Positions 28,299 through 63,648 of a stretch of 64,000 nucleotides of DNA are shown here, piece by piece. Each line of letters opens with the position of its first letter. Position 1 is the first letter of the stretch. The notes under the pieces were generated by a model. It was not told where the DNA came from and did no database searches. It saw nothing but the letters and a program-made list of their open reading frames with translations. A program made the position numbers and the translations under genes. This DNA comes from Macrostomum lignano. Taxonomy: Eukaryota. Location: the NCBI GenBank assembly GCA_002269645.1, contig NIVC01000989.1, positions 124,001-188,000 of the forward strand, given 5' to 3'.

Positions 28299-29819
28299 AT
28301 GTCGGAGCCGACCACTTCCTGCTTTATCAAAGGCTGCACCGATCCTGTGTCTGGCACCGGTGCTCGAATACGTCAGCCACTGTGTGAAAGACATCTCGAA
28401 CAGGACAGGCACAGGGTGCGTGAGTTGCACAAGAATTTACAGGCAAAGCTGAAACCATTGCTGAAATTGCAGAAAGAATTTCGGATGCAGCAGCAAGCTC
28501 TGTCAGTTGAGCTGCAAGAGACTGAGGAGCTGTTTGAGTCGGCTGTGGACTCGCTGATGAAGTGGAAGGCAGCTGTGACAAAGCGACTGACTGAGAGACA
28601 CGACAGCGTGTTGCAGAATCTGCAGCAGTTGTCCGCTCTGCAGGAGTATGAGCGAGAAGTGACGGAAGCAGAAGAGCACAATGACTTCAATAAAATGTTT
28701 GAGATCTCTGGCGTGCTAGATATTCAGAGTGAAGAGTTGCAGATGGCAGGTGGCACGACTATTAACAAGGACTCTGAGCGAGGCACTGGAAGGACTGTGG
28801 GCGATGTGAGCGGCTGTGTGAGGGACTTACAGCTGCTAATTGACAGACACCTGAGTGATGTGATGCAGCTGTGCGAGTCAGCAGACTCACTTTGTGCAGA
28901 TCAGCCAATCTGTGAGTTTCAGACTAAAATAAAAGATCTGCCGGGTTCTCCTTTCTATGTGACATCATGCAGCAACACGCAAGACTTTTACGTGGATTCG
29001 CAGTGCAAGGTGGTCAACGGTCCGACTGACAGAGGGCTTCCACTGCCGTGTCTCTTCATTATTTTTCATCCTAATGATAAGATAAACTACCTTCTTGCCT
29101 GCTCAGTCGACGGCTTAGTGAAAGCGCAGCTACAGCTCGACATTGATGTCTCAAAAACTGTTGTAGGACTCTGCTGTGACAGCAAGCGACAGAGTCTTTA
29201 TGTTGCTCAGTTTGACGCAGTGAAGGTGACGGACCTGAGCGGCTGCGTGACGCAGGTTTTCAACTCGAGCAGCATGGGACAGCCAGTCAACCTTATTGCT
29301 TTGGCCTGCAGCTCTGACAAGATATTTACTTTGAGGAAAGGCAACCCAGAATGGTCAGTGCTGTGCATCGATAAAGACAGCGGTCAGCTGCAGACCAACA
29401 TTACCTTAGTTGGCGTCGGTCCCTCTGGTAAAGTCACCGAAGGCATGTCTGTAGTCGACAACACGCTGCTGCTCACTGACTACGAAGGTGGCAAGCTCTA
29501 CAAAGTGTGCATCGCCAGCGGTCAGCTGATCTCGACTTACCCGACCAAGCGAAGCCGTCTTGACAAGCTATCTGGACCTGTTGGTGTCGCGGCTCATCGC
29601 TCAGGTTTGCTGTTTGTCAGCGAGTGTTCAGGGCGAGTGGTTCGTTTGATGCGGAGTGACGGCACTGTGCTGCAGACTGTCGAAGTGGAATGTCAGGCTG
29701 ATGGTGGCGCTAGGAAACTTGATTCCCCTTTTGGCTTGGCGATCATTGAAGGAAGCCCCGAGCTTTTGGCCGTCACCCAGAATAACATGTCTATTAGTAT
29801 TTATAGACGGAATTTATAA
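28299..29819 (+). CDS. TRIM-NHL-like protein copy 1 (Zn knuckle, coiled coil, NHL-like beta-propeller), 506 aa, intronless CDS
   Basis: ATG at 28299 after a splice acceptor; CFIKGC...LCERH, long helical region, NHL-like blades such as [19 protein letters not shown] and [10 protein letters not shown]. Confidence 0.85.
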
Positions 29820-32082
29820 TTCACATTCACAAAATCCTGCTAACTATTTGTCTATCTATTTGATACCCTTAATTTATTCTGGTTCGCAAGCATGTTACTT
29901 GGCTTAGCTATTGATGATTCTCTTTGTGTCAGTTTTTTTCTGCATTTGATTTTTCATTTTTGCTTAGTTTGTTTCCAATTTTATAATACTGCATTTTCAC
30001 GCAAGATACTATCGCTTTTGGTGATTAAAATACTCGTATGACATCAAGCAAATAACGAGAGACTCGCTATGCTTTATATGCAAATGTACCAGGATGAAGC
30101 AGAATCTCACCAGAATCGTTACATTGCTTTGCATTTGAAGTAAACTGTTCGATGTGTTTAAGGTCATTTGTAACTATTTTGAATGAGCAATCAAGCCTCT
30201 GGTCAGATTTATCACTTTTGACAAAGTAATGACGGACTGACCGTTATATTTTGGTTTGACTTGATCCATATAGTTATTTTAATCAATTGGCACAGCAGCG
30301 TTGCATGATAAGCAAATGAGGTCTCAGTTTGATTTGTGTAAAGTCTAATTTAGATCGCTAAAAAGGCGATTTTTTGGTAGGGTTTACACATTTGTGCTGA
30401 TTGCTTTTATTGTTGTAACATATTTATTGCATTTGTATGTCAGTGAATGGTTTTTGTACCTGACGAACATCTATTTTGTACTCGTAAGTTTGTATGTCGG
30501 AAATTTTTGTCGAAATAGGCATTTACGAGCGATATTATCATTTATTTCAACAAACTTTTCATACTAACGCGTGATAATAAGGTTTTTTTCTCGAGTAATT
30601 ACGAACTGCTCTCTACAGTTTATCCTGTTTTTATCTAGCCATTATCAACTCCTGAAATCTCCGATCCCACTGCAGCTACTATAACAACTTGATATGCCAT
30701 GTCACTCGCGGTTAAATTTGCTAAAAAGCAGAGCGTCTACTCTTTATTCAGTAGTTTGTGTGCGCAGAGGTACTTTAATTTGATGTGGCAGCCATAAAAT
30801 GTCATCCTCGGGTTCGCGGCCTCTCTCGCTCGCCTGCACACGCGCTGGATATGGATTTGGAAAATCAGAGGCAATAGTTGCAGCTTTAAGAACTTTAAAT
30901 ATTATGTAAAATTTAATACACTTTCATAGCGCTATCATAAAAGCAAAATAACACAAATTTACTGCAGAATAATATAAGTAAAGCGCTTTTTGTGACTGGC
31001 ATATCAAGTATCTTTGAAACCCACGGTATATTTTTGTATTCGCTTTGCATCCCGACTTATTAGCCATAATTTTCACTACTGACTAAATAAATATTGCATA
31101 TGTTGACCGTTAAAACCTAAAGCAATTTTCGTCTGGACTTATTTACCTTAGTTTAAAGACAGCTCTTAGTCTCCAAGCTTTTCAGTTGTAAAATTCAGTT
31201 GTTAAAGTCTCAACCGACCTCAAGCCATAGGAGTTTCTTATCCTCAGAAATGGTCTCATAACAGCGATCCTATTATACGGTATTCACTCATTCTTGGTGT
31301 AGACAGAGTAGAAAACTGAAGGGCTAGGCAAGTCTTGTATTGAACACCCGGTTGCATGGATACAAGTATTGATGCCATCAATACGAGCGTATTACAGTGC
31401 CATGCAAGTTAAGCTTTGCTAGTCTATTTGGCTCTTACATTTCTAAAATTAAATACATTTTTGCTTCATTATTATAAAGGCAAAATACGCAAATTTCACT
31501 ACTAAGAACTGTAGATAAGCTCTTTTTAAGTAGCATATCAAGTTTTTTGGGAATTGTGTACCTTACCGTATATTTTTGTATCCGTTTCGGGTATGACTCA
31601 ATAACTGGAATTTCTACTACTACCCTAATAAATTCTGCATATCAGCTACGTTCTCTCTTTAAATTTAGTAAAATTTTCGTCTGCAGTTATTTATAATTTT
31701 GTCCGACGAAAAAACTTAGTCGCCCAGTTTTCTGATTGTAAAATTCCCATTTTTAGGCCTTAAATTTTTAAGCAGGCCTCATTCCAAAGTCTTCTAATCA
31801 AAAAAGCTACTACGAGCGTTGCAACTTGTGAATTACACCCTCAATAGGTCACTCACACAATAAAGCATAAACTGAAATATGGCATTGTTTAGCTTGGTTA
31901 CAAAGTTGAGCCTCATTTCGATTATAACCTTTCTAACGTCTGAGCGCTTTATTAGAGTGATGAAGTCACGCTTTGCAGAGTTCAGATTTATCATCAGCTT
32001 TAGTCAGCTTTGCTTTGTGAAAAATGGCTTTCTAATTTCTGTATTAAATTCACTATAATATCATATTTTCAGTTACGACTCA

Positions 32083-33597
32083 ATGTCGAAGCCGACCACT
32101 TCCTGCTTTATCAAAGGCTGCACCGATCCTGTGTCTGGCACCGGTGCTCGAATCCGTCAGCCACTGTGTGAAAGACATCTCGAACAGGACAGGCACAGGG
32201 TGCGTGAGTTGCACAAGAATTTACAGACCAAACTGAAAACTTTGTCGGAATTGCAGAAAGAATTTCGGATACAACAGCAAGCTCTGTCAGTTGAGCTGCA
32301 AGAGACTGAGGAGCTGTTTGAGTCGGCTGTGGACTCGCTGATGAAGTGGAAGGCAGCTGTGACAAAGCGACTGACTGAGAGACACGACAGCGTGTTGCAG
32401 AATCTGCAGCAGTTGTCCGCTCTACAGGAGTATGAGCGAGAAGTGACGGAAGCAGAAAAGCACAATGACTTCAATAAGATGTTTGAAATTTCCAGCGCAT
32501 TCGATATTGAGAGTGAAGAGTTGCAGACGACGTTTGGCACGACTATTACCGAAGACTCTGAGCGAGGCACTGGAAGGACTGTGGGCGATGTGAGCGGCTG
32601 TGTGAGGGACTTGCAGCTGCTAATTGACAGACACCTGAGTGATGTGATGCAGTTGTGCGAGTCAGCAGAGCCTTTTAGTGCAGAAAAGCCTATCTGTGAG
32701 TTTCAGTCTGAAATTAAAGATCTGCCGGGTTCCCCTCTCCATGTGTCATCATGCAGCAACACGCAAGGCTTTTACGTGGATTCTCAGAGCAAGATGGTCA
32801 AGGAGGTCACTGACAGAGAGCTGCCACAGCCGTGTCTCTTTGTTAGTTTTCATCCTGAGAATAAGATAAACTACCTTCTTGCCTGCTCAGTCGACGGTTC
32901 AGTAAAAGCAGAGTTACAGCTCGACATTGATATCTCAAATACTGTCGTTGGTCTCTGCTCTGACAGCAAGCGACAGAGTCTTTATGTCGCCCAGTTTGAT
33001 GTAGTGAAAGTGACGGACCTGAGCGGCTGCGTGACGCAGGTTTTCAACTCGAGCAGCCTGGGACAGCCAGTTGACCTTATTGCTTTGGCCTGCAGCTCTG
33101 ACAAGATATTTGCTTTGAGCAAAGGCAACCCAGAATGGTCAGTGCTGTGCATCGATAAAGACAGCGGTCACCTGCAGACCAGCATAACTTTGGTTGGTGT
33201 CAGTCCCTCGGGTAAATTCATTGAGGGTATGTCTGTAGTCGACAACGCGCTGCTGCTAACCGACTGTGCCGCTGACAATCTCTACAGAATGTGCATCGCT
33301 AGCGGTCAGCTGATCTCGACCTACCCGACCAAGCGAAGTCGCCTTGATAAGTTTCGTGAAGTTGTTGCTGTCGCAGCTCATCGCTCGGGGCTGCTGTTTG
33401 TCAGCGAAGGGCATGTGGTTCGTGTGATGCGCAGTGACGGCATTGTGCTGCAGTCCGTGGAAATCGGGGGTCAGTCTGGCAGTGGCGGAAGAAAACATGA
33501 TTACCCTTTCGGCTTGGCGATCATCGAAGGAAGCTCCAAGCTGCTGGCGGTGTGTCAGGATGCAAAGGCAATTGGCATTTATAAGCTTACTGTGTAA
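32083..33597 (+). CDS. TRIM-NHL-like protein copy 2, 504 aa
   Basis: Full ORF paralogous to copy 1. Confidence 0.85.
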
Positions 33598-34398
33598 TTT
33601 TACCAGTGCGGCTGGAAGTTGCGGTGGCGATCATTGAATGAAGCCGTAATCTGCTGGCCGTCACCTAGGGTAACATTTCTGTTTGTGTATCCCGGCGCAT
33701 TATATACATGTAAGTCTTCTGTGAAATCATACAAACTTTATTTTTTTGCTCATAGCTAATCATGTCTCGCTCGCCTTAGCTGTTAAGGAGTCTGTTTTCC
33801 AGTTTTGGTTTCCATAATTGTTTTTTTTGCGTTTAGTTTGCTTGCAATTATATGATGCAGCATTTTTGCACAAGCTCTTATCGTTTTTGGCGATTCGAAC
33901 AAGACTTCAGACAAACAATGCGAGATTCCCTATGCTTTATATGCAAGTGTACCATGGTGAGGGTGAATCTAACCAGTGTATGCATATCTACTGCTGGACC
34001 TTGAAAAGTCTTCACTCTGATCTAGTGAGCCATTTTTCTCCGATCTCAACTACAAGTTACGCAACTGACATCCCGCGCGGTTAGCCGTATTATTCAATTG
34101 CACACTAAATGAAAGCCGCCTCAGAGCCCAGGCAATTCCGTTAGTCAATTGGCAAATCATTGATTGCATGACCAACAATTCGAGTCTCAGTTTGTGATTT
34201 TTCTAAAGTTTTTTTGTTCGAGTGTCAGTGTCAAAGTCTCCAAATTTTCTAAAATCGCTAATAAAGTGTTTTGTATCTGTTATGGTTTACTCAACAGTGC
34301 TGATTACTTTATGCTTGCAGCACATTTATTGCTTTTCTGTGTCAAATAGTGATTTTTATCGCCGACGAGTATCTACTTTGCGCTGTTGCACTCCTAAG

Positions 34399-35418
34399 TG
34401 AAATAGTTTGGGTTTCTTCCCGGTTAGGCACTTAAGATTACCTTAAGTCTCGAGCCTCTTCAGAGGGAAGTTCTCTCAAATCTCAGTAGCGTAGGTAGTT
34501 CTGCCACCAGTTCCTTCAGGTCTCGGCCTTCGGTGAGGTGAGCTTCCCTTCGGAACGAAATAATGAAGTCAACGAACACAGCACAGCGTGCAGATTTAAA
34601 GCGCAACGAATAAGGCGTCTCGTCAGCAGTACCTGCCGGGCTAGGATGGTAGAGGGAGGGCTGAGTTAGCCTCTCGTAAACTTGGGCTGGCTTGGTCGGG
34701 CTTCAGTCGGAGCAATAAGAATAGAATCAATGTACGCAAAGACTCGAACACTCAGGACTTGGTCACACGCGAACGTGGAACTCGATGTTGGACAGAACAG
34801 ACACCAAGCAGAAACTGACACAAAGCTGAAAACTCCTTGACGGTAACAAGGGGGAGAGGGCTCCTATTTATAGCCGGGAAACACCCGCGCTCAAGACCTC
34901 GTGACTTGTTCTATTTTTAGAACTGACGTCACTCGAGAGTTCCGGGCAGGGTACAAGCGCGCGGGAGACCTCGTGACTTATTCTATTTTTGGAACTGACA
35001 TCACTTGAGGTCCCTGGCCAGAGTACACGCGGCTGTGACTCAGTTGCTATTTTTAGCAACATGAGTCACTCCTTTCCTTAGAGAAGGGAGGGGTCCGAAA
35101 GCACGTGACTCACCCGGTAAACAGGGCCAACGAGTGCAGTAAACATGTTTACTGCACTTTAAGACTCAAAGAACGCAAGAACTGTCATGTGACTTGCTCA
35201 CAAGACAGGGAAAACGGGACGGGAGCGAAACAGAGACAGCCCACGGTCGAGAGACTGCGGGCTGAGAACGGAAACGCAGCAGGGCGGAAAGGGACACAGG
35301 GGCAACAGGCAAGCGAAAGGAGGGCGGGAAGCTGACCAGCGGCAGACAGCAACCCAAAGGGAGGGCAAGGGAACGGCTGACTAGGGCGACGCCTAACCAA
35401 AACTAGCGGCTCACTACA
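34399..35418 (-). mobile_element. Solo LTR (1020 bp) with 4 bp TSD TAAG, probably Gypsy-type
   Basis: TG...CA termini; taag at 34395-34398 and 35419-35422; TATAAATA on the minus strand at 34865-34872; the flanks rejoin to match the uninterrupted homologous spacer after copy 4 (about 47890-47940). Confidence 0.75.
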
Positions 35419-36553: not shown

Positions 36554-38071
36554 ATGGCGGAGCTGGGCACTTCCTGCTTTATCAAAGGCTGCACCGATCC
36601 TGTGTCTGGCACCAGTGCTCGAATCCGTCAGCCACTGTGTGAAAGACATCTCGAACAGGACAGGCACAGGGTGCGTGAGTTGCACAAGAATTTACAGACC
36701 AAACTGAAAACTTTGTCGAAATTTCAAAAAGAATTTCGGATGCAGCAGCAAGCTCTGTCAGTTGAGCTGCAAGAGACTGAGGAGCTGTTTGAGTCGGCTG
36801 TGGACTCGCTGATGAAGTGGAAGGCAGCTGTGACAAAGCGACTGACTGAGAGACACGACAGCGTGTTGCAGAATCTGCAGCAGTTGTCCGCTCTGCAGGA
36901 GTATGAGCGAGAAGTGACGGAAGCAGAAGAGCACAATGACTTCAATAAGATGTTTGAGATTTCCGGCGCGTTAGATATCAATTGTGAAGAGTTACAGACG
37001 ACGTGCGACATAAGTATAACCGAAGACTCTGAGCGAGGCACTGGAAGGACTGTGGGTGATGTGAGCGGCTGTGTGAGAGACTTGCAGCTGCTGATTGACA
37101 GACACCTGAGTGATGTGATGCAGCTGTGCGAGTCAGCAGAGTCACTTTGTGCAGATCAGCCAATCTGTGAGTTTCAGTCTGAAATAAAAGATCTGCCGGG
37201 TTCTCCTTTCTATGTGACATCATGCAGCAACACCCAAGGCTTTTATGTGGACTCTCAGAGCAAGGTGGTCAAGGAGACCACTGACAGAGAGCTGCCACAG
37301 CCGTGTCTCTTCTTCAGTTTTCATCCTAATGATAAGCTAAACTATCTTTCCGCATACTCGGTAGACGGCAAAGTAAAGGCAAAAATTCAGCTCGACATTG
37401 ATATCTCAAAACCTGTCGCTGGACTCTGCTGTGACAGCAAACAACAGACACTTTATGTTGCTGAGTATCGCACATTAAAGGTGACGGACCTGAGCGGCTA
37501 CGTGACGCAGGTTTTCAACACGATCAGCCTAGAACAGCGAGTCAGATTTTTTGCTTTGGCCTGCAGCTCTGACAAAATATTTGCTTTAAGCAAAGGCAAA
37601 CCAGAATGGTCAGTGCTGTGCATCGATAAAGACAGCGGTCAGCTGCAGACCAAAATTACTTTAATTGGTGTCGGTCCCTGTGGTAAAGTCACTGAGGGCA
37701 TTTCTGTAGTCGACAACACGCTGCTGCTCACCGACTATGAAGGTGACAAGCTCTACAAAGTGTGCATCGCAAGCGGTCAGCTGATCTCGACCTACCCGAC
37801 CAAGCGAAGTCGTTTCGACAAGCTTTGTGGACCTGCTGATGTCGTGGCTCATCTCTCGGGTCTGCTGTTTGTCAGCGAGTGTGATGGGCATGTGGTTCGT
37901 GTGATGCGGAGTGACGGCACTGTGCTGCAGACTGTCGAAGTCGGGGGTCAGGCAGGCAGTGGCAGAAAAATTGGCGACCCATTTGGCTTGGCGATCATCG
38001 AAGGAAGCCCCAAGCTGCTGGCTGTCACACAGAGTAACATGTCTGTTTGTATTTATAAAGTGATGATATGA
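36554..38071 (+). CDS. TRIM-NHL-like protein copy 3, 505 aa
   Basis: Full ORF paralogous to copy 1. Confidence 0.85.
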
Positions 38072-40156: not shown

Positions 40157-41149
<993 letters not shown>

Positions 41150-41296
41150 TAGCCGGGGAGTTTCTCGGTTGCTAGCGGTCGGGCCGGTACGGGCTTAAGC
41201 CACCCCCCGGTCGCTACCTCTTGGCCTGGTTGTTGGGTTTGGGGTTACGGCCCAGCGGCTTCTCACCTTTAGTCCCCACTCGCCTTTCAGCGACTC

Positions 41297-42762
41297 ATGG
41301 AGTATTCACTTACCTCCGACACGTCCGAGGCTGCTGGAGCACCAACCGAGGTTGGCACCGCGGCCCAGCCGGACATTCGCAACACCGGAACCCCCGGTGC
41401 CTCTCAATCTGCCGCTGCCGCCGCTCAGGATAATACCGGAGTGGCTGGACAAGACAGCGGACCTCAGATTTCAAAAAAGAAGGCCCGTAGCATTGCTCGC
41501 TACAAAGCCTTTCTCCAGCGCAAAGCGGAGGAACGGAGGAATGCGAAAGCCGCCCCTCCGGCCACCTCTGAGGAGGGTGCCGGTAACTCTGCGAACTCCG
41601 CGGAGGAGCCGACATCCGACAAGGGGGTGGACCCCGCGCGCCGGTCTGATGCGTCAGGTGCCGCCGAAGCTCCTGGTGCGGCTGGCCCCTCCCGTGACCG
41701 GACCTCTGCCCGTGTGGAAGCTCCCACGGCCGTGGAGGGATCCAAAGCGGGGGGCGCTGGCCAAACCACAAAGCCGAAGCGAACCTACGCGGCTATGGCC
41801 AAAAGGCAGCCGGCCCTGGTTATCCAAGGCCAGGAGACGCCTCTTACGGCCGAACAGCTCGACCTTATCTGGCGCAGGTTGGACTCCCACCTGGTCAAGA
41901 TGGCCTTGAGCGGCACTACCATTCGAGTCCAAAAGACGAAAGTCGAGGACCAAGCCCTCTATATCCAGCCCACCGACAGCCAGTCAGGACAGCAGCTCCT
42001 CGAGCTGCTGAAAACCTTCGACTGGGGTACGGAGCTGGAGAACCTGTTCATCTACAGGGAGGACGAGCGACCCCGGACACACCGGCACCGTGCCTGGATC
42101 CCGGCTCGCAGCTGCATCACCAAGGCCGACGAGCTGCGTCACCTGCTAGTGGCTTCCAACCCGGAGCTACCGGCCAACGGTGTCGTAGTTCACGAGACCA
42201 TCTCCAAGCCAGGCGGAGACGGTTTCACGGCCATTCTTTGACTGTCGGATAGCTGGATGCTCCGCTACCCGGACATGTCCATCATCTCTGTCGGGCTGTT
42301 GCAGATTCAGCTCTTTAGCTTTGAGTCTGACGCCACCCGCCCACCGCCCCCGGAGAAGCGTAAGCGGGCAGTCGGGGGCTCTGCCGGGCGGAAACGCCCA
42401 GGAAAAGAAGCTCCCGGCCGTCACGAACCCTCCGAGGACATGGACCCTGTCAGAGGGAAAGCCGCGAAAGCTGCAGCAACAGGCGGACGTGGGAAGGGCC
42501 GGAAACCCGCCCGGAACACTATCCGCTCTGGTCTGACTCAGCGCGCGAAACAGCTGCTGGACACCGCCAAGGCCCCCAACCGCAGCCACCCCCAGCCCAG
42601 TGTCACCACTGCGGCCCCCCCGGAAAACCGGGCCGAGAGCGAGAATGCCGCCCAGGTAGCGACCCCGCCCTCGACCATGGAATCCATCCGGGAGGAGCCC
42701 ATGGAGCTGGAGCCTGGAGCTATCGGCGAGGCAGAAGAGGCAGCTCTCCTGCACAACTCGCC

Positions 42763-42766
<4 letters not shown>
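41297..42766 (+). CDS. Retrotransposon ORF1 (~489 codons) with one in-frame TGA at 42239-42241
   Basis: ORFs 41297-42241 and 42257-42766 share one frame; the central region (RAWIP...LVASNPEL) resembles, from memory, the DUF4780-type ORF1 of LOA elements. Confidence 0.7.
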
Positions 42767-46510
<3,744 letters not shown>

Positions 46511-49500
46511 CTGCCCGTGGTCGCCAGGGGTTAGCGAAATGGGCGGCAACGCCTCCTCGCTGTTTCCGGACGCACGGAGCCCCCTGCAGCTAAGTCAAGA
46601 CGGACCTGAGCGGCTGCGTGACGCAGGTTTTGAACTCGAGCAGCCTGGGACAGCCAGTCCTTTTTATTGCTTTGGCCTGCAGCTCTGACAAGATATTTGC
46701 TTTGAGCAAAGGCAACCCAGAATGGTCAGTGCTGTGCATCGATAAAGACAGCGGTCAGCTGCAGACTAAAATTTCCTTGATTGGAGCCAGTCCCTCTGGT
46801 AAATATGTCGAGGGCATGTCTGTAATCGACAATACGCTGCTGCTTGCTGACTATGCCGGTGGCAAGCTCTACAAAGTGTGCATCGCCAGCGGTCAGCTGA
46901 TTACGACCTACTCGACCAAGCGAAGTCCTCTGGAGAAGTTTCGTGGAACTGTTGGTGTCGCGGTTCATCCGTCGGGTCTGCTGTTTGTCAGCGAGCGTTC
47001 AGGGCATGTGGTTCGTGTGATGCGCAGTGACGGCACTGTGCTGCAGACTGTGGAAGTCATGGGTCAGACTGGCAGTGGCGGAAGAAAATTTGATTACCCT
47101 TTTGGCTTGACGATTATTGAAGGAAGCCCGAAGTTGCTGGCGGTGTGTCAATATTCAAAAGCAATTGGCCTTTATATAAGCTTACTGTATAATTTTTTAT
47201 AATTTTGTGCAACTGTCTGGTATTTGCGGTGGCGAACTTGATGGCTCATTTGAATTGGCGATCATTGAATGAAGCCGTAAGTTGCTTGCCCTCACCCAGA
47301 GTAATTTTTTTGTATCCCAACTGATTATATAATTCTCTTTTGCGAAATCCTTCAAACTGTTTAACCTTTTTATTGCTCATAACTAATCATTGTTCACCCG
47401 TCATAGCTCAGAGCCCAGACTATAGTGTGCAATTGAATAATAATACTGGTCCCCGCGCGGAATGCCAGTTGCGTATCTTGCTGTTGCGATCGGAGAGAAA
47501 TGGCTCACTTACCCTCACCAGCTCAGGGTGGATAATTTTCAATGTCCCACAGTGTATGCACCTTATGTAATTATGCTTAAGAAAGCATGCAACTGACAGA
47601 AATATTTAAGGTCATTTGCCAGCAGTGTTAGTGAGCAAGCAACCCTCGAGAAAGATTTATCACTGCTAGTCATGAGCTGACCGTCTTATTTTAGTTTAAC
47701 TCGAATCCAGACAATTCTTTTAGTCACTTGGCAAAGCAGCGTTGCATGATGAGCAAATGAAGTCTCAGATTTAGGTCGCTAATAAAGTGTTTTGTATCTG
47801 TTATGGCTTACTCAACAGTGGTCATTAATTTCATGATTTTAGCACATTCATTGCTTTTCTGTGTCAAATAGTGATTTATAGCCTGACGAGTATCTATTTT
47901 GCTGTTGCTCTGGTAAGTTTCGATGGCCGAAATAGTTCACAAAATGAGTATTTATATACAGGCATTTAAAAAGCTTTATTCTAGCTTAGGGTTACCTTTT
48001 TGTCGGTAATCACAAATTGCTGTCTGCAGCTCATCTCTTTTTATTCAGCTATTTTCATTCAACTCCAGACATCTCGGATTCCACCACAGACACTAGAATC
48101 TGTTCTGGTACGCTACTTGAAATTAAGTTGTGATGAACTGGAGTGTCTACTCTTTATTTCAGTAGTTTGTCTGCGCAGTGTCACTGAAATTCATTGTAGC
48201 AGCTAAAATTTTCTTTCCTTTCTTTTTGTTGGTGGCGTCTGTAGCATATGGGGTTAAAAATGAACAATCGAATAAAAATTTAACTCGATGTGCACAAGTC
48301 AACACCAGACGGACGAAACTCAGCCTAGGGGGCAGGCCTAATCTAGCTCAGCCATATAGAGGGCAATCTGGAGAGACGTCACAGTCAGACAAGCGGGCAA
48401 GAGGAAAGCCAAACTGTTTATCGGCCTGGCTGTGGACTGGGGCGCCACCCCGTTTTCTCTCTTGATATGCACACGCGCTGGATTTGAGTCTTCTTTTAGA
48501 AAGCCAAAGACGACTGTTGCAGATTCAACAACTTTAATATTTTGTACAATTGAATGATTGTTTGCTCAACTTTTATAGGGGAGTACGCAATATTTACTAC
48601 TAAAAAGAGTAGATAAGCATTTTTGTATGTGGCATACCTAGTTATTTTTAGTATCTGAGGATCCCATCACATATTTTTGTATCCGTTTCGCGTCTTGACT
48701 CTCACCAGAATATTTACTACTGCCCAAATAAATGGTGCATTTCTGTGCTACGTTGACTCTTCAAAATTGAAGCAATGTTCGTCTGCAGTTATTTATTTTG
48801 CTGTTATACGATACTTAGTCTTCAAGCTCTTCCGAGGCACAAAAGGTGCACAGTGGGAACTTTAGGCGTAGAAGCAATGCAAGGGGCGTTCCAACTCGCG
48901 AAAGTTCTTTGCTACTTTTCCTCACTATTCTTTGAAAAGATTCAAAACTTTTCACCACTTTTCGGAACTTTTCCTCAGTATTTGAAAGTCATTGAAACTT
49001 ATCAGTATTATAGGGAATGTTTACTTTCGAGGTTTGCCAGAATCAGAAAGGGGATGGCAGCGATTAGTATTAGTATAGTAAATAAAGCTCTTTCTATGTT
49101 CAATCTGTGCCTGCAATATACGAGTATGTAACTCTCAGTTAATTTTTATTACTAATTCCCGTTGGAAAGTTATTCACCTGCATAGGCATAAAAAAGTGAG
49201 CGAGGACGGTGCACATAAGAGGCACTTTAGTGGTCTATTTCGTGCGTGTTTTGGAAATGCACCTGTATGCACCTATTACATGTATTACACCTATTACTGT
49301 ATACATGTACGCTTCACACACCTGTAATTCACCTTTTATGCGCTTTCTGCGCCCCTTCAGCACCCCCCGTGCACCTGCTGTGCCTCACTTGTGAGCCTAC
49401 TGTTCACCCTTTGCGCAGCTGCAGTGCCCCTTTACTGCCCCTACAGCCGCAACTAGTAAGAATTGACAATTTCCCTAATGCCTGACAAACTTCACCGATT

Positions 49501-49847
49501 GTACACTTTTCATGCCTCTTTTCAAAACTTTTCCAACGGGTACGATTTTGACCGCATTGCAGTTGTGATTGCCTTATGATTGGTTTTCGAAAGTTTTAAT
49601 ACACTGTAAATAGATCTAAAATATATTTATAGGAAAGGTCTATATCTGTTTTCAGAACCCGAATGATGTTAGTAGGATTTTTGAGTTGACATCTAGCAAA
49701 ATTGATATGCTCTAAGGCCAGTTTTATGCATTTAAATCACAGTGCAATGTAGCATCCTTCGATTAATTATCTGTAATAAACATTGCGTTTGGTTATTTTC
49801 ATTTATTACAATGCAGTTTGGCCAAAACCTATTCTAATTGCAGACAA

Positions 49848-51368
49848 ATGTCGGAGCCGGGCACTTCCTGTTTCATCAGATGCTGCACCGATCCTGTGTC
49901 TGGCACCGGTGCTCGAATCCGTCAGCCACTGTGTGTAAGACATCTTGAACAGGACAGGCACAGGGTGCGTGAGCTGCACAGGAATTTACAGACCAAACTG
50001 AAGCCATTGCTGAAATTGCAGAAATGATTCAGGATGCAGCAGCAAGCTCTGTCAGTTGAGCTGCAAGAGACTGAGGAGCTGTTTGAGTCGGCTGTGGACT
50101 CGCTGATGAAGTGGAAGGCAGCTGTGACAAAGCGACTGACTGAGAGACACGACAGCGTGTTGCAGAATCTGCAGCAGTTGTCCGCTCTGCAGGAGTATGA
50201 GCGAGAAGTGACGGAAGCAGAAAAGCACAATGACTTCAATAAGATGTTTGAGATCTCTGGCGCCTTGGATATTAAGAGCGAAGAATTACAGATTACGAGT
50301 TACGCTGCTATTAACGAAGACTCTGAGCGAGGCATTGGAAGGACTGTGAGCGATGTGAGCGGCTGTGTGAGGGACTTGCAGCTGCTGATTGACAGACACC
50401 TGAGTGATGTGATGCAGCTGTGCGAGTCAGCAGAATCACTTTGTGCAGATCAGCCAATCTGTGAGTTTCAGTCTGAAATAAAAGATCTGCCGGGTTCTCC
50501 ATATTATGTGTCATCATGCAGCAACACGCAAGGCTTTTACGTGGATTCTCGCAGGAAGGTGGTCAAGGAGGTCACTGACAGAGAGCTGCCCCAGCCGTGT
50601 CTCTTTGTTAGTTTTCATCCTAATAATAAGATAAACTACCTTCTTGCTTGCTCAGTTGACGGCTTAGTGATAGCGGAGCTGCAGCTCGACATTGATGTCT
50701 CAAAATCAGTCGCTGGCCTCTGCTGTGACAGCAAGCGACAGAGTCTTTATGTCGCCCAGTTTGATGCAGTAAAGGTGACGGACCTGAGCGGCTGCGTGAC
50801 GCAGGTTTTCAACTCGAGCAGCCTGGGACAGCCAGTCGACTTTATTGCTTTGGCCTGCAGCTCTGACAAGATATTTGCTTTGAGCGATGTCAACCCAGAA
50901 TGGTCAGTGCTGTGCATCGATAAAGACAGCGGTCAGCTGCAGGCCAACATTACCTTAGTTGGTGTCAGTCTCTCTGGTAAATTCACTGAGGGCATGTCTG
51001 TAATCGACAACTCGCTGCTGCTCACTGACTATGAAGGTGGGAAGCTCTACAAAGTGTGCATCGCCAGCGGTCAGCTGATCTCGACCTACCCGACCAAGCG
51101 AAGCCGTTTTAAAAAGTTTTCTGGACCGGTTGGTGTCGCGGCTCATCGCTCAGATCTGCTGTGTGTCAGCGAGTATGCAGAGCATGCGGTTACTTTGATG
51201 CGGAGTGACGGCACTGTGCTGCAGACTATCGAACTCGAGGGTCAAGCTGGCAGTGACGGTGACGAACTTGATGACCCATTTGGCTTGGCGATCGTTGAAG
51301 GAAGCCCGAAGCTGCTGGCGGTGTGTCAAGATTCAAAATCGATTGGCCTTTATAAGCTTACTGTGTAA
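49848..51368 (+). pseudogene. TRIM-NHL-like copy 5 with an in-frame nonsense codon (GAA>TGA at 50025-50027)
   Basis: ATG at 49848 is in frame with the 444 aa ORF starting at 50034; the other copies read E at this codon. Confidence 0.8.
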
Positions 51369-53600: not shown

Positions 53601-54186
53601 GTTTGCATTATCAGGAAAAGTCAGTTGAATCCGCCGCCTCAGTTATTTGGCTCTCACAATGAAACTTGAAGTAGACATAGAGCCATAGGGATGAGAGACC
53701 AGACGAGCAACACCATATTTAAAATATTTCCCCCCATCATCAGAAATGGGCTCATTAGGAGCAATCTAATCTATTTATTCATCATTGATGCAGACAGCGT
53801 ACAAAACTGAAGAGCTAGGCAAAGCTTTGTCCTAAACACACCAGTGCTATAGATACAATTATCGATGCCATTAATACCATAGTCCCGTGCAAATTTAAAT
53901 TGCCTATTCATCTGGCTCTGACCGCAAAATTGAAGTTTCCGTTTGTAAGCAAGTTATATGGTTTCAAAAGTAACTTTAAAGTTGTGAATTATGTCATTTG
54001 GTCCCTCTCGCATCATATCAAATTTAGCGGAATGGGCGTCCGCGCCTTCCCGCTGTGTCCCCTCCGGGACAGCCCTGCAGCATCATATCAACTTAAATAT
54101 GGCATTTTTGGCTTTGTTAAAAGTTTTCAGTATTTTCACAGGATAAGTATTTTTCATTATTTTAAAGTATTTTCAGTTCCAACTCA

Positions 54187-55707
54187 ATGTCGGAGCCGAC
54201 CACTTCCTGCTTTATCAAAGGCTGCACCGATCCTGTGTCTGGCAGCGGTGCTCGAATACGTCAGCCACTGTGTGAAAGACATCTCGAACAGGACAGGCAC
54301 AGGGTGCGTGAGTTGCACAAGAATTTACATACAAAGATGAAGCCCTTGCTGAAATTGCAGAAAGAATTTCGGATGCAGCAGCAAGCTCTGTCAGTTGAGC
54401 TGCAAGAGACTGAGGAGCTGTTTGAGTCGGCTGTGGACTCGCTGATGAAGTGGAAGGCAGCTGTGACAAAGCGACTGACTGAGAGACACGACAGCGTGTT
54501 GCAGAATCTGCAGCAGTTGTCCGCTCTGCAGGAGTATGAGCGAGAAGTGACGGAAGCAGAAAAGGACAATGACTTCAATAAGATGTTTGAAATTTCTAAC
54601 GCGTTAGATATAAAGAGTGAAGAGTTGCAGACGACGTGTGGCCCGGCGTCTAACGAAGACTCTGAACGAGGCACTGTAAGGACTGTTGGTGATGTGAGCG
54701 GCTGTGTGAGGGACTTGCAGCTGCTGATTGACAGACACCTGAGTGATGTGATGCAGCTGTGCGAGTCAGCAGACCCACTCAGTGAAGATCAGCCAATCTG
54801 TGGGTTTCAGTCTGAAATAAAAGATCTGCCGGGTTCTCCTTTCTATGTAACATCATGCAGCAACACGCAAGACTTTTACGTGGACTCTCAGAGCAAGGTG
54901 GTCAACGATCCGACTGACAGAGAGCTGCCACAGCCGTGTCTCTTCGTTAGTTTTCATCCTAATGATAAGATAAACCACCTTCTTGCCTGCTCAGTCGACG
55001 GCTTAGTGAAAGCGCAGCTACAGCTCGACATTGATGTCTCAAAAACTGTTGTAGGGCTCTGCTGTGACAGCAAGCGACAGAGTCTTTTTGTTGCTCAGTT
55101 TGACGCAGTGAAGGTGACGGACCTGAGCGGCTTCGTGGCGCAGGTTTTCAACTCGAGCAGCCTGGGACAGCCAGTCAACTTTTTTGCCTTGACCTGCAGC
55201 TCTGACAAGATATTTGCTTTGAGCAAAGGCAACCCAGAATGGTCAGTGCTGTGCATCGATAAAGACAGCGGTCAGCTGCAGACTAAAATTTCCTTGATTG
55301 GAGCCAGTCCCTCTGGTAAATATGTCGAGGGCATGTCTGTAATCGACAATACGCTGCTGCTTGCTGACTATGCCGGTGGCAAGCTCTACAAAGTGTGCAT
55401 CGCCAGCGGTCAGCTGATTACGACCTACTCGACCAAGCGAAGTCCTCTGGAGAAGTTTCGTGGAACTGTTGGTGTCGCGGTTCATCCGTCGGGTCTGCTG
55501 TTTGTCAGCGAGCGTTCAGGGCATGTGGTTCGTTTGATGCAAAGTGACGGCACTGTGCTGCAGACTGTCGCAGTGGAGGGTCAGGCTGGCATTTGCGGAA
55601 GAAAACTTGACAACCCATTGGGCTTGACGATCATCGAAGGAAGCCCCAAGCTGCTGGTGGTGTGTCAAAATTTAAAATCAATTAGTCTTTATACTTTTAC
55701 TGTGTGA
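54187..55707 (+). CDS. TRIM-NHL-like protein copy 6, 506 aa
   Basis: Full ORF paralogous to copy 1. Confidence 0.85.
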
Positions 55708-56533
55708 TTTTTAAGTTCATCGGGATAAATTTGCGGTTGTGAAGGCTGTTTGACATGGTGTTAGTTATTTTTTATTCACATTTAATGTTTTTTTAACACT
55801 TCATTAGTATTCTAATGCTGTATTAGTAGTATTATGAGTAGTCAGCAGTTATTTTTCGGTTCATCCGGCACGCAATTATTTGAAAAGCTATTTTTTAATT
55901 TTATATACTGATTTTACTCCGAGTGGAAATCAATTTTTGTTTAGCTTTAGTACCACGATACTTACTTTATGTGTTGTGAATAAAATTTATAGTGACTGAT
56001 AAACACTTTGATTACCTGATTTATATTTTTCTTCTGTTTAATTTTTAACTCTTAGCAACAAGGCTGTGATTCCTTTTGAGCAAATTACTTTTTATTGTAA
56101 TTCGAAGGTTGAGTTGGACCTTCTCGAAATTTTAATTTTTTAATTGTAAGTATAACAAAATTTATCATACTAATCTAAATATAGCATTCCGTTATAGGGC
56201 TGGAGGAATTATTCGAAATTTGGAAATTTATTTTAAACATTAATACGAGTAGGGCAATCAAAAATTTTAATAAATTGCCAACTTTCTGGCTTTTTTCTTC
56301 AGATACATCAGTGTTGCCACATTTTATGCTATTTGTTGTTTTCTGCGCTGAAACCTGTTCTATATTTGATCGTCTATTGTTGCTAAAAAGTCTTTCGACA
56401 AGGAATATACGAACTATTGAAAATTTGCTAATTTCCTGATAAGGTTATCAAATGTCTTAAGCTGTTATTTTAGTTTCCGTGTTTGGAATCCATTAGTTAG
56501 GTTCAAATGTAACTAGGATTATATTTATATATA

Positions 56534-57225
56534 GACATTGATAACTCCAAAACTGTTGTAGGACTTTGCTGTGAGAGCAAGCGACAGAGTCTTTATGTTG
56601 CTCAGTTTGATACAGTGAAAGTGACGGATCTGAGCAGCTGCGTGATTCAGGTTTTTGACTCAAAGAATCTCGAACAGCCAGTCGACTTCAGTGGCTTGGC
56701 CTGCAGCTCTGACAAGATATTTTCTTGAGTTTAGGCAGCCCAGAATGGTCAGTGCTGTGCATCGATAAAGACAGCGGTCAGCTGCAGACCAAAATTACCT
56801 TAGTTGATGTCTGTCCGTCCGGTAAATTAATCGAGGGCATGTCTGTAATTGACAACGCGTTGCTGTTTTCAGACTATGCTAATGGCAAGCTCTACAAAGT
56901 GTGCATCGCCAGCAGTTAGCTGATATTGACCTACCCGACCAAGCGAGGTCGGATAGGTCGTGTTGCTGTCGCGGCTCATCGCTCGGGTCTGCTGTTTGTC
57001 AGTGAGTGTTTAGGGCATGTAGTTCGTGTGATGCGGAGTGACGGCACTGTGCTGCAGACTGTCGAAGTCGACTGTCAGGCTGGCAGGGACGGTGACACAC
57101 TTGACGATCCGTTTGGCCTGACGATTATTGAAGGAAACCCCAAGCTGCTGGCTGTCACTCAGAGTAACATGTCTTTCTGCATTTATAGACTAAATATGTG
57201 TGACTCTCTTGCGAAATCCTACTAA
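56534..57225 (+). pseudogene. TRIM-NHL-like copy 7, 5'-truncated fragment (blades 2-6)
   Basis: Homology starts at [12 protein letters not shown]; 1 bp deletion near 56725; CAG>TAG stop at 56917-56919. Confidence 0.85.
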
Positions 57226-57427
57226 CTATTTAGTCTTTTTGTGTTCGTAACTAGTCTTGTTTCGCTCGCCTGTTTGGCTTTGCTGTTATTGATTCTGTTT
57301 CATCATTTTTTAAGTTTTTTATAGTTGGTTCTTACGAGTAAACTTTTCGTTTAGTTCGTTTCCAATATGATGCAGCATTTTTGCACCAGCTATTATCGCT
57401 TTTGGAGTTTCGAATGTGACTTCAGAC

Positions 57428-58084
57428 TAGGGGTGTTCGGGTTTCGGGTTTTCGGGTTTTATATTTTTACGAGTTGAAACGAAATTAAGCGTAAACTGAG
57501 TAGTTCCAGGTTTTTTTACGTATATTTAAATTTTTGAATCGTTATAAATATCATTTTAGTATGCCACCTTACCTTATGATGCGCAACAATTTACACAAAT
57601 GATTAATTAAGGCTTCGTCAAAAATCTGTTTAGAAAAAAATTGAATTTATATATTATAGCCTCCTCCAAGCAAAAGAAGACAATATTGGTGCATTTGCAT
57701 TGCTGACTAATATTATTATGCAGTCATATTATTCAATAATTTATTGACAGAATCTTTAATAGTTATAAATTATGGTGAGATAAAGCCTTGAACGTCAGAG
57801 AACTTAGAGCCCTTGAAGAAAAGCAGATAATATAACCCTTTTGCAGTGTTTCGACATGATACTACAGTGTTACTTTCCGAGCGCGCTTAAAAATACGAAA
57901 AATAGTGCAACTATTTTGATTCTGATTGAGTATTGATGTTTTTTTTCGGATAGAATTTCTGGGTCCGGGTCGGATTCGGTTTCGGGTTATTTGTTCGGGT
58001 CGGGTTCGGGGTTCGGGGTTAGAGCTTCGGGTTCGGGTTGGGGTTCTACCCCGAACCCGAAAAAAAGAAACCCGAGCACCCCTA
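57428..58084. mobile_element. hAT-superfamily MITE (657 bp)
   Basis: 18 bp TIRs (taggggtgttcgggtttc / gaaacccgagcaccccta, one mismatch); 8 bp TSD cttcagac at 57420-57427 and 58085-58092; subterminal ttcggg repeats. Confidence 0.88.
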
Positions 58085-59711
58085 CTTCAGACTAATAACG
58101 GGTGACTCGCTGTGTCTCATATGCAACTGTACCATGGTGAGGGTGAGTGTCACCAGTGTGTACATGCATATATGTGCTTTATATAATACTCGTTGCTCGT
58201 AAAGTTAAGGAAATCAACTGAAGAAAATATTTAATGTCATTTGCAACCATTTTTAGTGAGCAAACAATTCTTTGCACAGATTTATCACTGCTAATAATGA
58301 GCTAACCGTACTATTTTAGTTTGACTTGATCGAGACAGTTCTTGTCAATTGGCAAACCAGCATTGCATGATGAGCATAGAGAGTCTTAGATTGATTTTCC
58401 CGAAGTTTAATTTAGATTAGATATTCAATGAAGTGTTTTTGACAGTGTTTGTTTTTGTTTTGTTTTTGAAGTGTTATTCACTTGTAAAAACTTTATCCTA
58501 CTAGCCCACGGTAATAAAATTTCTTTTTGCTGATGCATATTTTCGATAGTCACAAATTGCTGTCTGGCGTTCATCCTCTTATTATCCAGCTTTTTTAGGT
58601 TCCCGAAGTCTCTTATCCCTAGTAAGATACTAGAATAAGTCAACATGCCACTCGCAATTAAACTTGTGAAATAGTAGAGCGTCTACTCTTCATTCAGTAG
58701 TTTTTCTGCGCAGTGTCACTTAAATTTATTGTGGCAGCTAAAATTTTCTCCTTTCCCTGGGTTGGTGGTTTTCGTAAGCATATGGTTAAGAATGAACAAC
58801 AGGCATTTAACTCGATGTACGCAAGTGAACGCAAGAAAAAAAATCAGTCTATGGGGTAAGCCTAATCTGGCCCAGCCAATGAGAGGGCAGTAAGAAGAGT
58901 GTCAAAGTCAGACAAAAGCGGGCAAGAGGAAAGCCAAACTGTTATCGGCCTGGCTGTGGGCTTGAACGCCACCTCTTTCTCTCTTGCTCGCTATGCACGC
59001 ATTGGATTCGGGTTTGATTTTAAAAAGACGATAGCAATTGTTGCAGATTCGAAAGCTTTAAATATTTTGTAAAATTGAATGAATATATACATTACTACGA
59101 GCGTATCATAATGGCAAAATACGCAAAAGTACTACTAAAAAGAAGTTCGAATAAAAAGGTGTTTTTTTCGGATGACACATTTAGTTTTTTGTGTCTGTGA
59201 ATCCTATCGCTTATTTTTGCATCCGTTTCGCAGCTTGACTTATTAACCAGACTTTCTACTACTGCCAAAATAAGTTATGCATATCTAAACTATGTTACCT
59301 TCAAAAAAAGAAATTTTTCTCTGTCATTTGATTTAGTGTCAAGACAAAACTTAGTTCCTAAGAGTAGAAAACTGTAGATCTCTGTTTAAAGCACCCAGTG
59401 CCATGGATACAGGATTAATGTCAATAATACCAAAGTACCATGCAAGTTTAAATCTCTAGTGATACTTGGTTTTGAATCCAGAATTAAAATTCTGGCTATC
59501 AAAGTTGGATGCTTTAAATATAAGTTTATAAAACTTGTTATTTACCCTCTCATTAAGTCACTCTCGCATTGCCTTTTTATGGTGATTAACTTAGAGTTGG
59601 CAGATTTCAGAAGTAATTATTCAGACAAGTTAGTTTTGCGTCAAGAAATGGTTTTCTGATTTCTGTATTAAACTTTACTACGAGTATAATCTTATTTTCA
59701 GTTGCAACTCA

Positions 59712-61232
59712 ATGTCCGAACCGAGCACTTCTTGTTTTATCAAAGGCTGCAACGATCCCGCATGTGGCACTGGTATACGAATCCTACAGCCATTGTGTGA
59801 GAAACACATTGAGCAGGACAGAGAAATTGTGCGAGATCTGTACGAAAATATGCAGAAAAAGCTGAAGCCATTGCTGAAATTGCAGAAAGAATTTCGGATA
59901 CAACAGCAAGCTCTGTCAGCTGAGCTGCAAGAGACTGAGGAGCTGTTTGAGTCGGCTGTGGACTCGCTGATGAAGTGGAAGGCAGCTGTGACAAAGCGAC
60001 TGACTGAGAGACACGACAGCGTGTTGCAGAATCTGCAGCAGTTGTCCGCTCTGCAGGAGTATGAGCGAGAAGTGACGGAAGCAGAAGAGCACAATGACTT
60101 CAATAAAATGTTTGAGATTTCCAGCGCGTTAGATATTGAGAGTAACGAGTTACAGATGGTATTTGGCACGTCTATTACCGAAGAATCTGAGCGAGGCACT
60201 GGAAGGACTGTGGGCGATGTGAGCGGCTGTGTGAGGGACTTGCAGCTGCTGATTGACAGACACCTGAGTGATGTGATGCAGCTGTGCGAGTCAGCAGAGT
60301 CTCTTAGTGCAGATCAGCCAATCTGTGAGTTTCAGTCAATGATAAAAGATCTACCGGGCTCTCCTTATTTTGTCTCATCATGCAGCAACACGCAAGGCTT
60401 TTACGTGGACTCTCAGAGCAAGGTGGTCAAGGAGCCCACTGACAGAGAGCTGCCACAGCCGTGTCTCTTCGTTAGTTTTCATCCTAAAAATAAGATAAAC
60501 TACCTTTTTGCTTGCTCAGTAGACGGCTTAGTGAAAGCGCAGCTACAGCTCGACATTGATGTCTCAAAAACTGTTGTAGGGCTCTGCTGTGACAGCAAGC
60601 GACAGAGTCTTTTTGTTGCTCAGTTTGACGCAGTGAAGGTGACGGACCTGAGCGGCTTCGTGGCGCAGGTTTTCAACTCGAGCAGCCTGGGACAGCCAGT
60701 CAACTTTTTTGCCTTGACCTGCAGCTCTGACAAGATATTTGCTTTGAGCAAAGGCAACCCAGAATGGTCAGTGCTGTGCATCGATAAAGACAGCGGTCAG
60801 CTGCAGACTAAAATTTCCTTGATTGGAGCCAGTCCCTCTGGTAAATATGTCGAGGGCATGTCTGTAATCGACAATACGCTGCTGCTTGCTGACTATGCCG
60901 GTGGCAAGCTCTACAAAGTGTGCATCGCCAGCGGTCAGCTGATTACGACCTACCCGACCAAGCGAAGTCCTCTGGAGAAGTTTCGTGGAACTGTTGGTGT
61001 CGCGGCTCATCGGTCAGGTCTGCTGTTTGTCAGCGAGTATTCAGGGCAAGTGCTTCGTTTGATGCGGAGTGACGGCACTGTGCTGCGGACTGTCGAAGTC
61101 GAGGGTCAGACTGGCAGTGGCGGGAGAAAACTTGATAGCCCGCTTGGCTTGGCGATCATTGAGCGAAGCCCAAAGGTGCTGGCGGTGTGTCAAGATTCAA
61201 AATCGATTGGCCTTTATAAGCTGATTGTGTAA
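59712..61232 (+). CDS. TRIM-NHL-like protein copy 8, 506 aa, divergent N-terminus
   Basis: Full ORF; keeps the C-x4-C-x15-C-x2-H spacing with a different sequence ([24 protein letters not shown]). Confidence 0.85.
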
Positions 61233-63645: not shown

Positions 63646-63648
63646 CAA

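Follow-up and report, generated by a model that had tools for sequence, protein, structure and literature searches.

Near-neutral evolution of predicted top-face loops on a conserved NHL-type propeller in a Macrostomum lignano tandem gene array

When neighbouring copies of a gene differ mainly in the loops of one predicted face of a protein domain, does this reflect diversifying selection on binding specificity? The question is raised by a locus of the flatworm Macrostomum lignano, lying in the 64,000-nucleotide stretch of contig NIVC01000989.1 that we analysed (the window; positions 124,001 to 188,000, assembly GCA_002269645.1). A tandem array occupies 28.3 to 63.9 kb on its plus strand and is made up of genes that lack introns and run to about 506 codons: five intact genes, one gene split by a long interspersed nuclear element (LINE), one with an in-frame stop codon and two 5'-truncated fragments (copies c1 to c7 and the fragments are listed in Table 1). 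In each array protein a zinc knuckle is followed by a long coiled coil and then by a divergent beta-propeller of the NHL type. An earlier reading of the sequence, hereafter the original prediction, had claimed that substitutions cluster in the loops entering each blade and in the b-c turns of the propeller, and had explained this by diversifying selection on the ligand-binding face. Our results show that change in the variable face proceeds at a roughly neutral pace, which significantly exceeds that of the scaffold carrying it but does not exceed neutrality.

We took the strands from an AlphaFold2 model of the domain and assigned the faces from strand topology, not from solvent exposure, following the NHL convention by which the top face is made up of the b-c and d-a loops and the bottom face of the a-b and c-d loops (PMC4015489). 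Among the seven copies of the window, 53 of 84 top-loop columns vary (63%), against 18 of 56 in the bottom loops (32%) and 66 of 149 in the strands (44%; Fisher test, top versus bottom p=5e-4, top versus strands p=0.0065). The same pattern is seen in twelve copies drawn from the window and from a second array of the genome (top 64/84, bottom 23/56, strands 75/149; top versus bottom p=4e-5), and in the five intact window genes alone (46/84, 16/56 and 58/149; p=0.003). It is carried by the last four blades, where the seven copies vary in 46 of 63 top columns, 9 of 31 bottom columns and 41 of 88 strand columns (top versus bottom p=1e-4). Over the whole propeller of the seven copies, 18 of 26 columns vary in the short b-c turns and 18 of 56 in the equally short bottom turns (p=0.002). 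Conservation prevails in the first blades, whose top loops vary at 1 of 6, 2 of 5, 1 of 4 and 1 of 4 columns. The top-loop enrichment is thus real and not due to chance; the predicted clustering in blade-entry loops and b-c turns stands for the last four blades and fails for the early ones. In the modelled fold, the variable residues fall in the loops defined as the top, ligand-binding face of NHL domains, the face by which the NHL domain of Brat binds RNA (PMC4015489). Insertions and deletions are found in the same variable loops.

All the sequence variants on which the original prediction was built are present in the window. At codons 423-429 the copies read KLSGPVG (c1), KFREVVA (c2), KLCGPAD (c3), KFRGTVG (c4, c6 and c7) and KFSGPVG (c5); the four residues after VSE (codons 443-446) are CSGR, --GH, CDGH, RSGH, YAEH or YSGQ; codons 378-382 read KVTEG, KFIEG, KYVEG or KFTEG, codons 394-398 DYEGG, DCAAD, DYEGD or DYAGG, and codons 473-477 KLDSP, KHDYP, KIGDP, KFDYP, ELDDP or KLDNP. 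Four more (KLIEG, DYANG, CLGH and TLDDP) occur solely in the broken fragment at 56525-57198 and are thus pseudogene variants. The blades to which these motifs were ascribed, 4 to 6 (U4, U5 and U6 of our model), may be 5 to 7, since the strand count fits seven a-b-c-d units. The accompanying claim that strand cores barely change was overstated, given that 44% of strand columns vary, although one conserved string of 11 residues is invariant in 12 of 12 copies and CIASGQLI and SDG.VLQ are nearly so. Over the whole protein, 28 columns show four or more different residues: 10 are in top loops, 2 in bottom loops and 1 in a strand, while 11 belong to the N-terminal half (8 of them at codons 138-155) and 3 to the C-terminal tail. 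The N-terminal cluster, at codons 138-156 of c1 and at the same offsets in other copies, is a linker as variable as the propeller loops, on which the original prediction was silent.

How fast do these loops evolve? Pairwise Nei-Gojobori estimates gave an overall ratio of nonsynonymous to synonymous divergence (omega, dN/dS) of 0.40, and a single segment, codons 426-450, exceeded 1 (1.18); in the b5-c5 turn dN was 0.39 and dS 0.13. We then used our own implementation of the Goldman-Yang codon-model likelihood, with F3x4 frequencies and with a neighbour-joining topology and M0 branch lengths for each partition of the alignment; site models were run on 11 sequences unless restricted to the eight intact genes. 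Overall omega was 0.48-0.52, with 56-60% of codons at about 0.15. Taken as a class, all top loops have an omega of 0.91-0.93 (against 1, p=0.35-0.46), the bottom loops 0.32-0.34 and the strands 0.37-0.38; equal omega across the three classes is rejected with p~1e-13, the top loops being about 2.5-fold higher. Within the top face, the loops of units U3-U6 reach 0.92-0.98 and those of U0-U2 only 0.33-0.40. The b-c turns have an omega of 1.04-1.12, and neither they, nor the top loops, nor the motif codons of the original prediction differ from 1. Purifying selection therefore acts on the strands and bottom turns that make up the propeller scaffold and on most of the coiled coil (omega about 0.15-0.4); in the last four blades, the d-a and b-c loops change at a near-neutral rate (omega about 0.9-1.0).

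Tests for a class of positively selected sites depend in this family on the trees that are used, because recombination, as Anisimova et al. reportedly found in 2003, inflates such tests. The copies are strongly mosaic, and the nearest neighbour of each switches along the gene (c3~c4 at codons 26-200, c4~c5 at about 176-275, c6=c7 at 276-400 and c4=c6 at 350-450). Under M0 the log-likelihood of a single tree is -7044, and dividing the alignment into 7, 11 and 20 partitions with local trees raises it to -6397, -6194 and -5941, respectively. Judged from the alignments, the mosaic pattern is that of gene conversion between copies, and the loops of the last four blades have been exchanged between copies as blocks. 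With one tree, twice the log-likelihood difference (2dlnL) between M1a and M2a was 23.5 (p=8e-6), and between M8a and M8 it was 22.0 (p=1.3e-6, halved chi-square); we rejected these single-tree results as a recombination artefact. With local trees, M1a/M2a gave 2dlnL of 5.0 (7 partitions, p=0.08), 3.1 (11, p=0.22) and 1.3 (20, p=0.52), and M8a/M8 gave 5.1 (7 partitions, p=0.012) and 4.2 (11, p=0.021), both by the halved chi-square, and 2.5 with 20 partitions (chi-square p=0.117, about 0.06 when halved). The statistics shrink as partitions become finer, which is how a recombination artefact behaves. M7/M8 was nominally significant (p=5e-4 with 7 partitions and 0.007 with 11), but this comparison is liberal when many sites sit at omega=1, as about 40% of sites do here. 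Restricted to the eight intact genes, M1a/M2a gave p=0.07-0.33 and M8a/M8 p=0.057-0.20.

Site models that allow for recombination, which the original prediction had proposed as a check, thus return a divided answer, nominally positive in M7/M8 and in M8a/M8 at 7 and 11 partitions, negative in M1a/M2a and fading with finer partitions. Sites with a posterior probability above 0.8 for the fast class are concentrated in the top loops, both with 7 partitions (19 of 81, against 12 of 172 in the rest of the propeller; p=4e-4) and with 11 (6 of 81 against 1 of 172); candidates are codons 287, 331, 375, 380, 443, 474, 476 and 496, in a class for which an omega above 1 is not robust. These data do not show diversifying selection, as M1a/M2a is never significant with local trees and no class-wide omega is significantly above 1. 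The original prediction had itself set a dN/dS of 1 or less at its sites as refuting, and for the 26 motif codons that it named omega is 0.88-0.92.

The second array offers a view of more recent changes. It lies on contig NIVC01003604.1 (41603-79595, loci L001 and L002), has the gene order of the window, and contains three intact copies (e6, e9 and e10) besides several that are broken. Its copies differ from their counterparts in the window by about 2.4-5.5%, and pseudogenising mutations are independent, e5 having a stop at codon 381 and c5 at codon 60; the second array represents the locus either as a homeologue or as an allele. The pseudogene fragment at 56525-57198 is 96.8% identical to its counterpart there, which sets a neutral yardstick of about 3%. 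In the top loops of the pairs c6/e6, c5/e5 and c2/e2 we counted 11.5 nonsynonymous and 11.5 synonymous substitutions, giving a ratio of nonsynonymous to synonymous differences per site (pN/pS) of 0.30 (p=0.011 against neutrality), whereas between paralogues the top-loop pN/pS is 0.71. The low value in matching copies hints at divergence after duplication followed by constraint, for which it is what would be expected.

That the domain is an NHL-type propeller, as first proposed, is borne out by profile and by fold. Pfam found no NHL, RING or B-box match in single array proteins (RING was searched in c2 and c7 at E<=1), and a single-sequence phmmer search of the PDB gave nothing better than Thin at E=0.36. 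A profile of 12 family sequences, however, matched PDB sequences of the NHL domains of Thin (3e-9), TRIM71 (3.6e-9), TRIM2 (1e-8) and Brat (6e-5), in the canonical register of P-x-G, strand a, a 'G' turn, strand b, the b-c turn, strand c, a 'dG' turn and strand d. The domain-only AlphaFold2 model (codons 205-506) has a mean predicted local distance difference test score (pLDDT) of 84.3 and a predicted template modelling score of 0.86. Its best Foldseek matches are the NHL domains of TRIM3 and TRIM2, with a template modelling (TM) score of 0.72 when scaled to query length, or 0.79 when scaled to target length, and a root mean square deviation of 3.7-3.8 A; the TRIM71 and Thin NHL domains are also matched, and seven-bladed WD40 propellers reach a TM score of about 0.6. 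The model has 27 strands, arranged as seven a-b-c(-d) units from U0 (218-246) to U6 (477-503) plus an N-terminal closing strand (206-211), and the a strand of every unit is preceded by a proline, as in NHL repeats. As to the number of blades, the fold matches would favour six and the modelled strand count seven. Alignment of the domain profile with itself by hhalign detected no internal repeats, the alignment being too little diverse for this.

The rest of the protein suggests where the family comes from. The full-length AlphaFold2 model (mean pLDDT 65.6) places helices at 30-126, 130-150 and 168-191 before the propeller, with moderate confidence in the coiled coil (pLDDT 54-69 over residues 31-140). 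Only four Cys/His residues before the coiled coil are invariant (C8-x4-C13-x15-C29-x2-H32), a motif that could bind a single zinc. Searched against 1.84 billion representative proteins, the family profile gave about 25 matches at E<=1e-30, most covering most of the profile; of these, 18 of the 18 named ones that were looked up are from M. lignano, and two short metagenome clusters complete the set, so that the full-length relatives found are M. lignano hypothetical proteins and those two clusters only; one of the hypothetical proteins carries a flag as a product of the window. About 2000 further proteins match codons ~420-482 repeatedly, and those checked carry 6-15 Pfam NHL repeats. A further word-indexed homologue search from the alignment brought nothing new. 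Distant M. lignano members of the family are flagged by UniProt as RING-, B-box- or NHL-containing, among them P0040 and P0041 as 'B box-type'. Because of the lone Cys/His motif and these flags, we infer that the family is a TRIM-NHL derivative without RING and canonical B-box. The region appears to be a young, Macrostomum-specific tandem array.

We propose, with a probability of about one half, that the array encodes binding faces that differ from paralogue to paralogue. Relaxed or episodic selection on the top loops of the four final blades would have produced them, gene conversion would have reshuffled them, and a conserved scaffold would display them. Genes of the array would duplicate, decay into pseudogenes and frequently undergo gene conversion. 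To judge by Brat and LIN-41, these top loops may be the partner-binding face, in which case the paralogues would carry different binding surfaces; the differences would stem from relaxed or episodic selection after duplication and not from sustained positive selection. In human TRIM-NHL proteins, too, the paralogues are most unlike one another around the top opening and in the loops that connect the blades (PMC9634614). As for the ligand, the top loops of a copy hold 7-14 K+R and 7-16 D+E residues, a net charge of -7 to +6 (a residue count, not electrostatics), and their one basic motif, PTKRSR at 415-420, is largely conserved. This near-neutral charge argues against an RNA-binding surface of the Brat type and gives weak support to protein partners. 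RNA-binding TRIM-NHL proteins such as Brat and LIN-41 have a basic top, whereas the top loops of the array are not net basic, which makes RNA no likelier a ligand than protein, and the RNA ligand implied by the RNA Bind-n-Seq check of the original prediction is not favoured.

A second element of this proposal is a block of the coiled coil, codons 67-128, that is almost invariant as DNA. Its synonymous diversity is 0.007 (pS), against 0.20-0.31 elsewhere, 58 of its 62 codons are invariant compared with 160 of the other 444 (p=4e-19), and the near-identity holds even in the divergent copy e9. Rfam gave no match in the window, so no RNA family explains the block. It could be a gene-conversion hotspot, a site of nucleotide-level constraint, or the outcome of selection for an interchangeable dimerisation interface; under the last of these the block would keep the dimerisation module interchangeable between copies. 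Shorter DNA-invariant blocks lie at codons 171-190 and 351-360.

Which other explanations could account for the variable loops? They may simply be the least constrained part of a redundant and partly decaying family, with no bearing on specificity, a possibility we take seriously and hold to be clearly less probable than our own proposal. It would explain why top-loop omega cannot be told from 1, why the disordered linker at 138-156 is equally hypervariable, why insertions and deletions affect the same loops, why many copies are pseudogenes or fragments, and why, under local trees, the selection models hardly fit better than the nearly neutral M1a and M8a. It sits badly, however, with the b-c turns, which are far more variable than equally short turns on the bottom, and with the first-blade top loops, whose conservation means that loop status alone cannot explain the pattern; nor would it predict the significant departure from neutrality in matching copies. 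Sustained, arms-race-type diversifying selection on binding specificity, with a subset of top-loop codons at omega above 1, is in our opinion unlikely. The nominal M7/M8 and M8a/M8 results, which place 15-27% of sites at omega 1.4-1.6, the excess of high-posterior fast sites in the top loops, the eight candidate codons and the high dN of the b5-c5 turn speak for it, but M1a/M2a gives it no support with local trees, the statistics dwindle as partitions become finer, the intact genes alone yield M8a/M8 values of p=0.06-0.20, class-wide omega is at most 1, and the recent divergence between arrays shows no nonsynonymous excess in the top loops. That the diversity is largely imported, from pseudogene fragments or from chimeras of assembly or annotation and not from functional paralogues, is hardly credible: four of the predicted variants are indeed restricted to a pseudogene fragment and two gene models are chimeric, but the enrichment persists in the five intact window genes and the same pattern is found in the second, independently assembled array.

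Several points nevertheless weigh against the paralogue-specific binding faces that we propose. A loop omega near 1 is equally predicted by unconstrained drift, and the faces were assigned from topology. In TRIM-NHL proteins the variable parts of the blade-connecting loops make no contact with the RNA substrate (PMC9634614). Decay of the family is possible: of the nine copies or fragments in the window four are broken, and the second array adds at least three. The comparison of matching copies draws on 23 substitutions, and pseudogenes enter into two of its three pairs. In the opposite direction, the weak residual M8a/M8 signal for a class at omega 1.4-1.6 (p of 0.012 and 0.021, and 0.117 at 20 partitions) makes some positively selected sites possible.

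Table 1. Features of the array and of related fragments (window positions unless a locus is given; codons follow c1)
Feature	Positions	Strand	Remarks
c1	28299..29819	+	intact, 506 codons; numbering reference; open reading frame (ORF) and translation, AlphaFold2 models; zinc knuckle C8/C13/C29/H32, coiled coil ~30-150, propeller codons 206-503
c1 invariant block	28497..28682	+	codons 67-128, 186 bp of coiled coil; same offsets in c2-c7 and L001/L002
c1 second hypervariable cluster	28710..28766	+	codons 138-156; low-confidence linker after long helix, outside propeller
c1 propeller domain	28914..29807	+	codons 206-503; AlphaFold2 domain model and Foldseek
c1 variable sector	29262..29789	+	codons 322-497, last four blades; same offsets in other copies
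Variable-sector loops (d-a, b-c)			codons 322-331, 348-351, 371-382, 395-398, 415-426, 443-446, 463-476, 495-497
c2	32083..33597	+	intact, 504 codons; b-c turn after VSE shorter by 2 codons
c3	36554..38071	+	intact, 505 codons; d5-a6 loop shorter by 1 codon
c4, 5' part	40193..41134	+	codons 1-314, interrupted by LINE insertion
Non-LTR retrotransposon in c4	41135..46598	+	5.46 kb; insertion at codon ~314
c4, 3' part	46612..47202	+	codons 315-502; normal stop lost, C-terminal tail altered
c5	49848..51368	+	full-length; in-frame TGA at codon 60 (50025-50027)
c6	54187..55707	+	intact
Pseudogene fragment	56525..57198	+	5'-truncated propeller fragment, codons 278-506; frameshift near 56725, stop codons
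c7	59712..61232	+	intact; N-terminal 50 codons divergent
3' fragment	63609..63872	+	propeller fragment, codons ~435-506; 95% identical to c7; adjoins 18-bp minisatellite
Propeller fragments, L002	12354-13004, 20899-21303
Propeller fragments, L001	4415-4819, 14024-14224

The coding regions of the array are 86-92% identical in DNA, while its spacers are alignable in patches only (66-75% identity). The 3' propeller half of c4 is nearly identical to its counterpart in c6. Two NCBI gene models on the contig of the window appear chimeric between neighbouring copies: P0001 joins the N-terminus of c1 to the body of c2, with a duplication of 53 residues, and P0002 passes from the 5' part of c4 over the LINE to the 3' part of c5. 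This chimerism is probably an annotation artefact of mapping transcripts onto a multicopy array. In both arrays, several full-length genes are followed, about 0.3-2.5 kb downstream, by 5'-truncated fragments that retain only the end of the propeller. We considered them as recent donors for gene conversion, but this is not supported, because they are only 80-88% identical to the full copies, the exception being the one at 63609 (95%, c7).

The element that splits c4, a retrotransposon without long terminal repeats (non-LTR), encodes an ORF1, an endonuclease and reverse transcriptase ORF (865 codons) and a separate RNase H ORF, with Pfam matches to RVT_1 (1.7e-31), Exo_endo_phos_2 (2.2e-19) and RNase_H (6.9e-11). 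A target-site duplication of 13 bp, GACGGACCTGAGC, lies on either side (41122-41134 and 46599-46611), and the element has a G+C content of 58-59% in surroundings of about 45%. Upstream of the array, positions 1-27500 are crowded with minisatellites, in more than 20 different arrays whose periods range over 4-136 bp and whose lengths reach 1.4 kb, and the large ORFs of the first 28 kb were rejected as genes, being read-through of minisatellites. At the other end, about 25 copies of the 18-bp minisatellite AGCTTCCCAAATCCCCCA (63183-63628) directly adjoin the last propeller fragment, and the two are read through as a proline-/lysine-rich ORF (63102-63872).

How does the family compare with known systems? 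We found no literature on it, searching Macrostomum together with NHL or TRIM-NHL, and the locus tags. With the TRIM-NHL proteins (Brat, LIN-41/TRIM71, TRIM2/3, Thin/TRIM32, Mei-P26 and NHL-2) it shares a coiled coil followed by a C-terminal NHL-type propeller, profile matches in the same a-b-c-d register, the best structural matches of its propeller, and paralogue differences that are greatest at the b-c/d-a top face (PMC9634614). It differs from them in having no RING, recognisable B-box or filamin domain, only the C-x4-C-x15-C-x2-H knuckle; in that the Pfam NHL model is not detected on single array sequences; in a strand count that suggests seven repeats, where TRIM-NHL propellers have six; and in being intronless, tandem, confined to a single lineage and homogenised by conversion, whereas canonical TRIM-NHLs are conserved single-copy regulators. 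The giant multi-NHL-repeat proteins of bacteria and archaea are matched by single blades at E values as low as 1e-37, above all by codons ~420-482, but they have many propellers and neither coiled coil nor zinc knuckle, and the similarity is at repeat level only.

TRIM5alpha and the fish finTRIMs, with their B30.2 domains, are multigene TRIM families in which recognition loops are hypervariable and positive selection is well established. The array resembles them, by analogy, in the combination of a coiled-coil dimer with a C-terminal recognition domain, in its tandem arrangement and in paralogue differences lying in surface loops of the recognition domain; it differs in using an NHL propeller instead of B30.2/SPRY, in having no RING E3 module, and in that positive selection is not established and no link to immunity is shown. 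It is conceivable, but in our judgement improbable, and more so than arms-race selection on the loops, that the array is an NHL-based counterpart of the TRIM5/finTRIM recognition repertoire, in which the invariant block would let the coiled coils pair in any combination, top-face loops would be diversified and recombined by conversion like cassettes, with the 5'-truncated fragments as possible donors, and the propeller might have seven NHL repeats. We know of no description of seven NHL repeats for TRIM-NHL proteins.

For the study of such families there is a lesson of method in these results: a PAML-style test on a single tree returned p~1e-6, and the signal became non-significant or borderline once gene conversion was modelled. 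As it stands, the array shows a pattern that is normal among young paralogues, a conserved scaffold with a variable presumed binding face. If the specificities of the paralogues truly differ, M. lignano, a regenerating flatworm model, would possess a lineage-specific repertoire of RING-less TRIM-NHL-like proteins, and the NHL propeller would serve there as a diversifiable recognition module.

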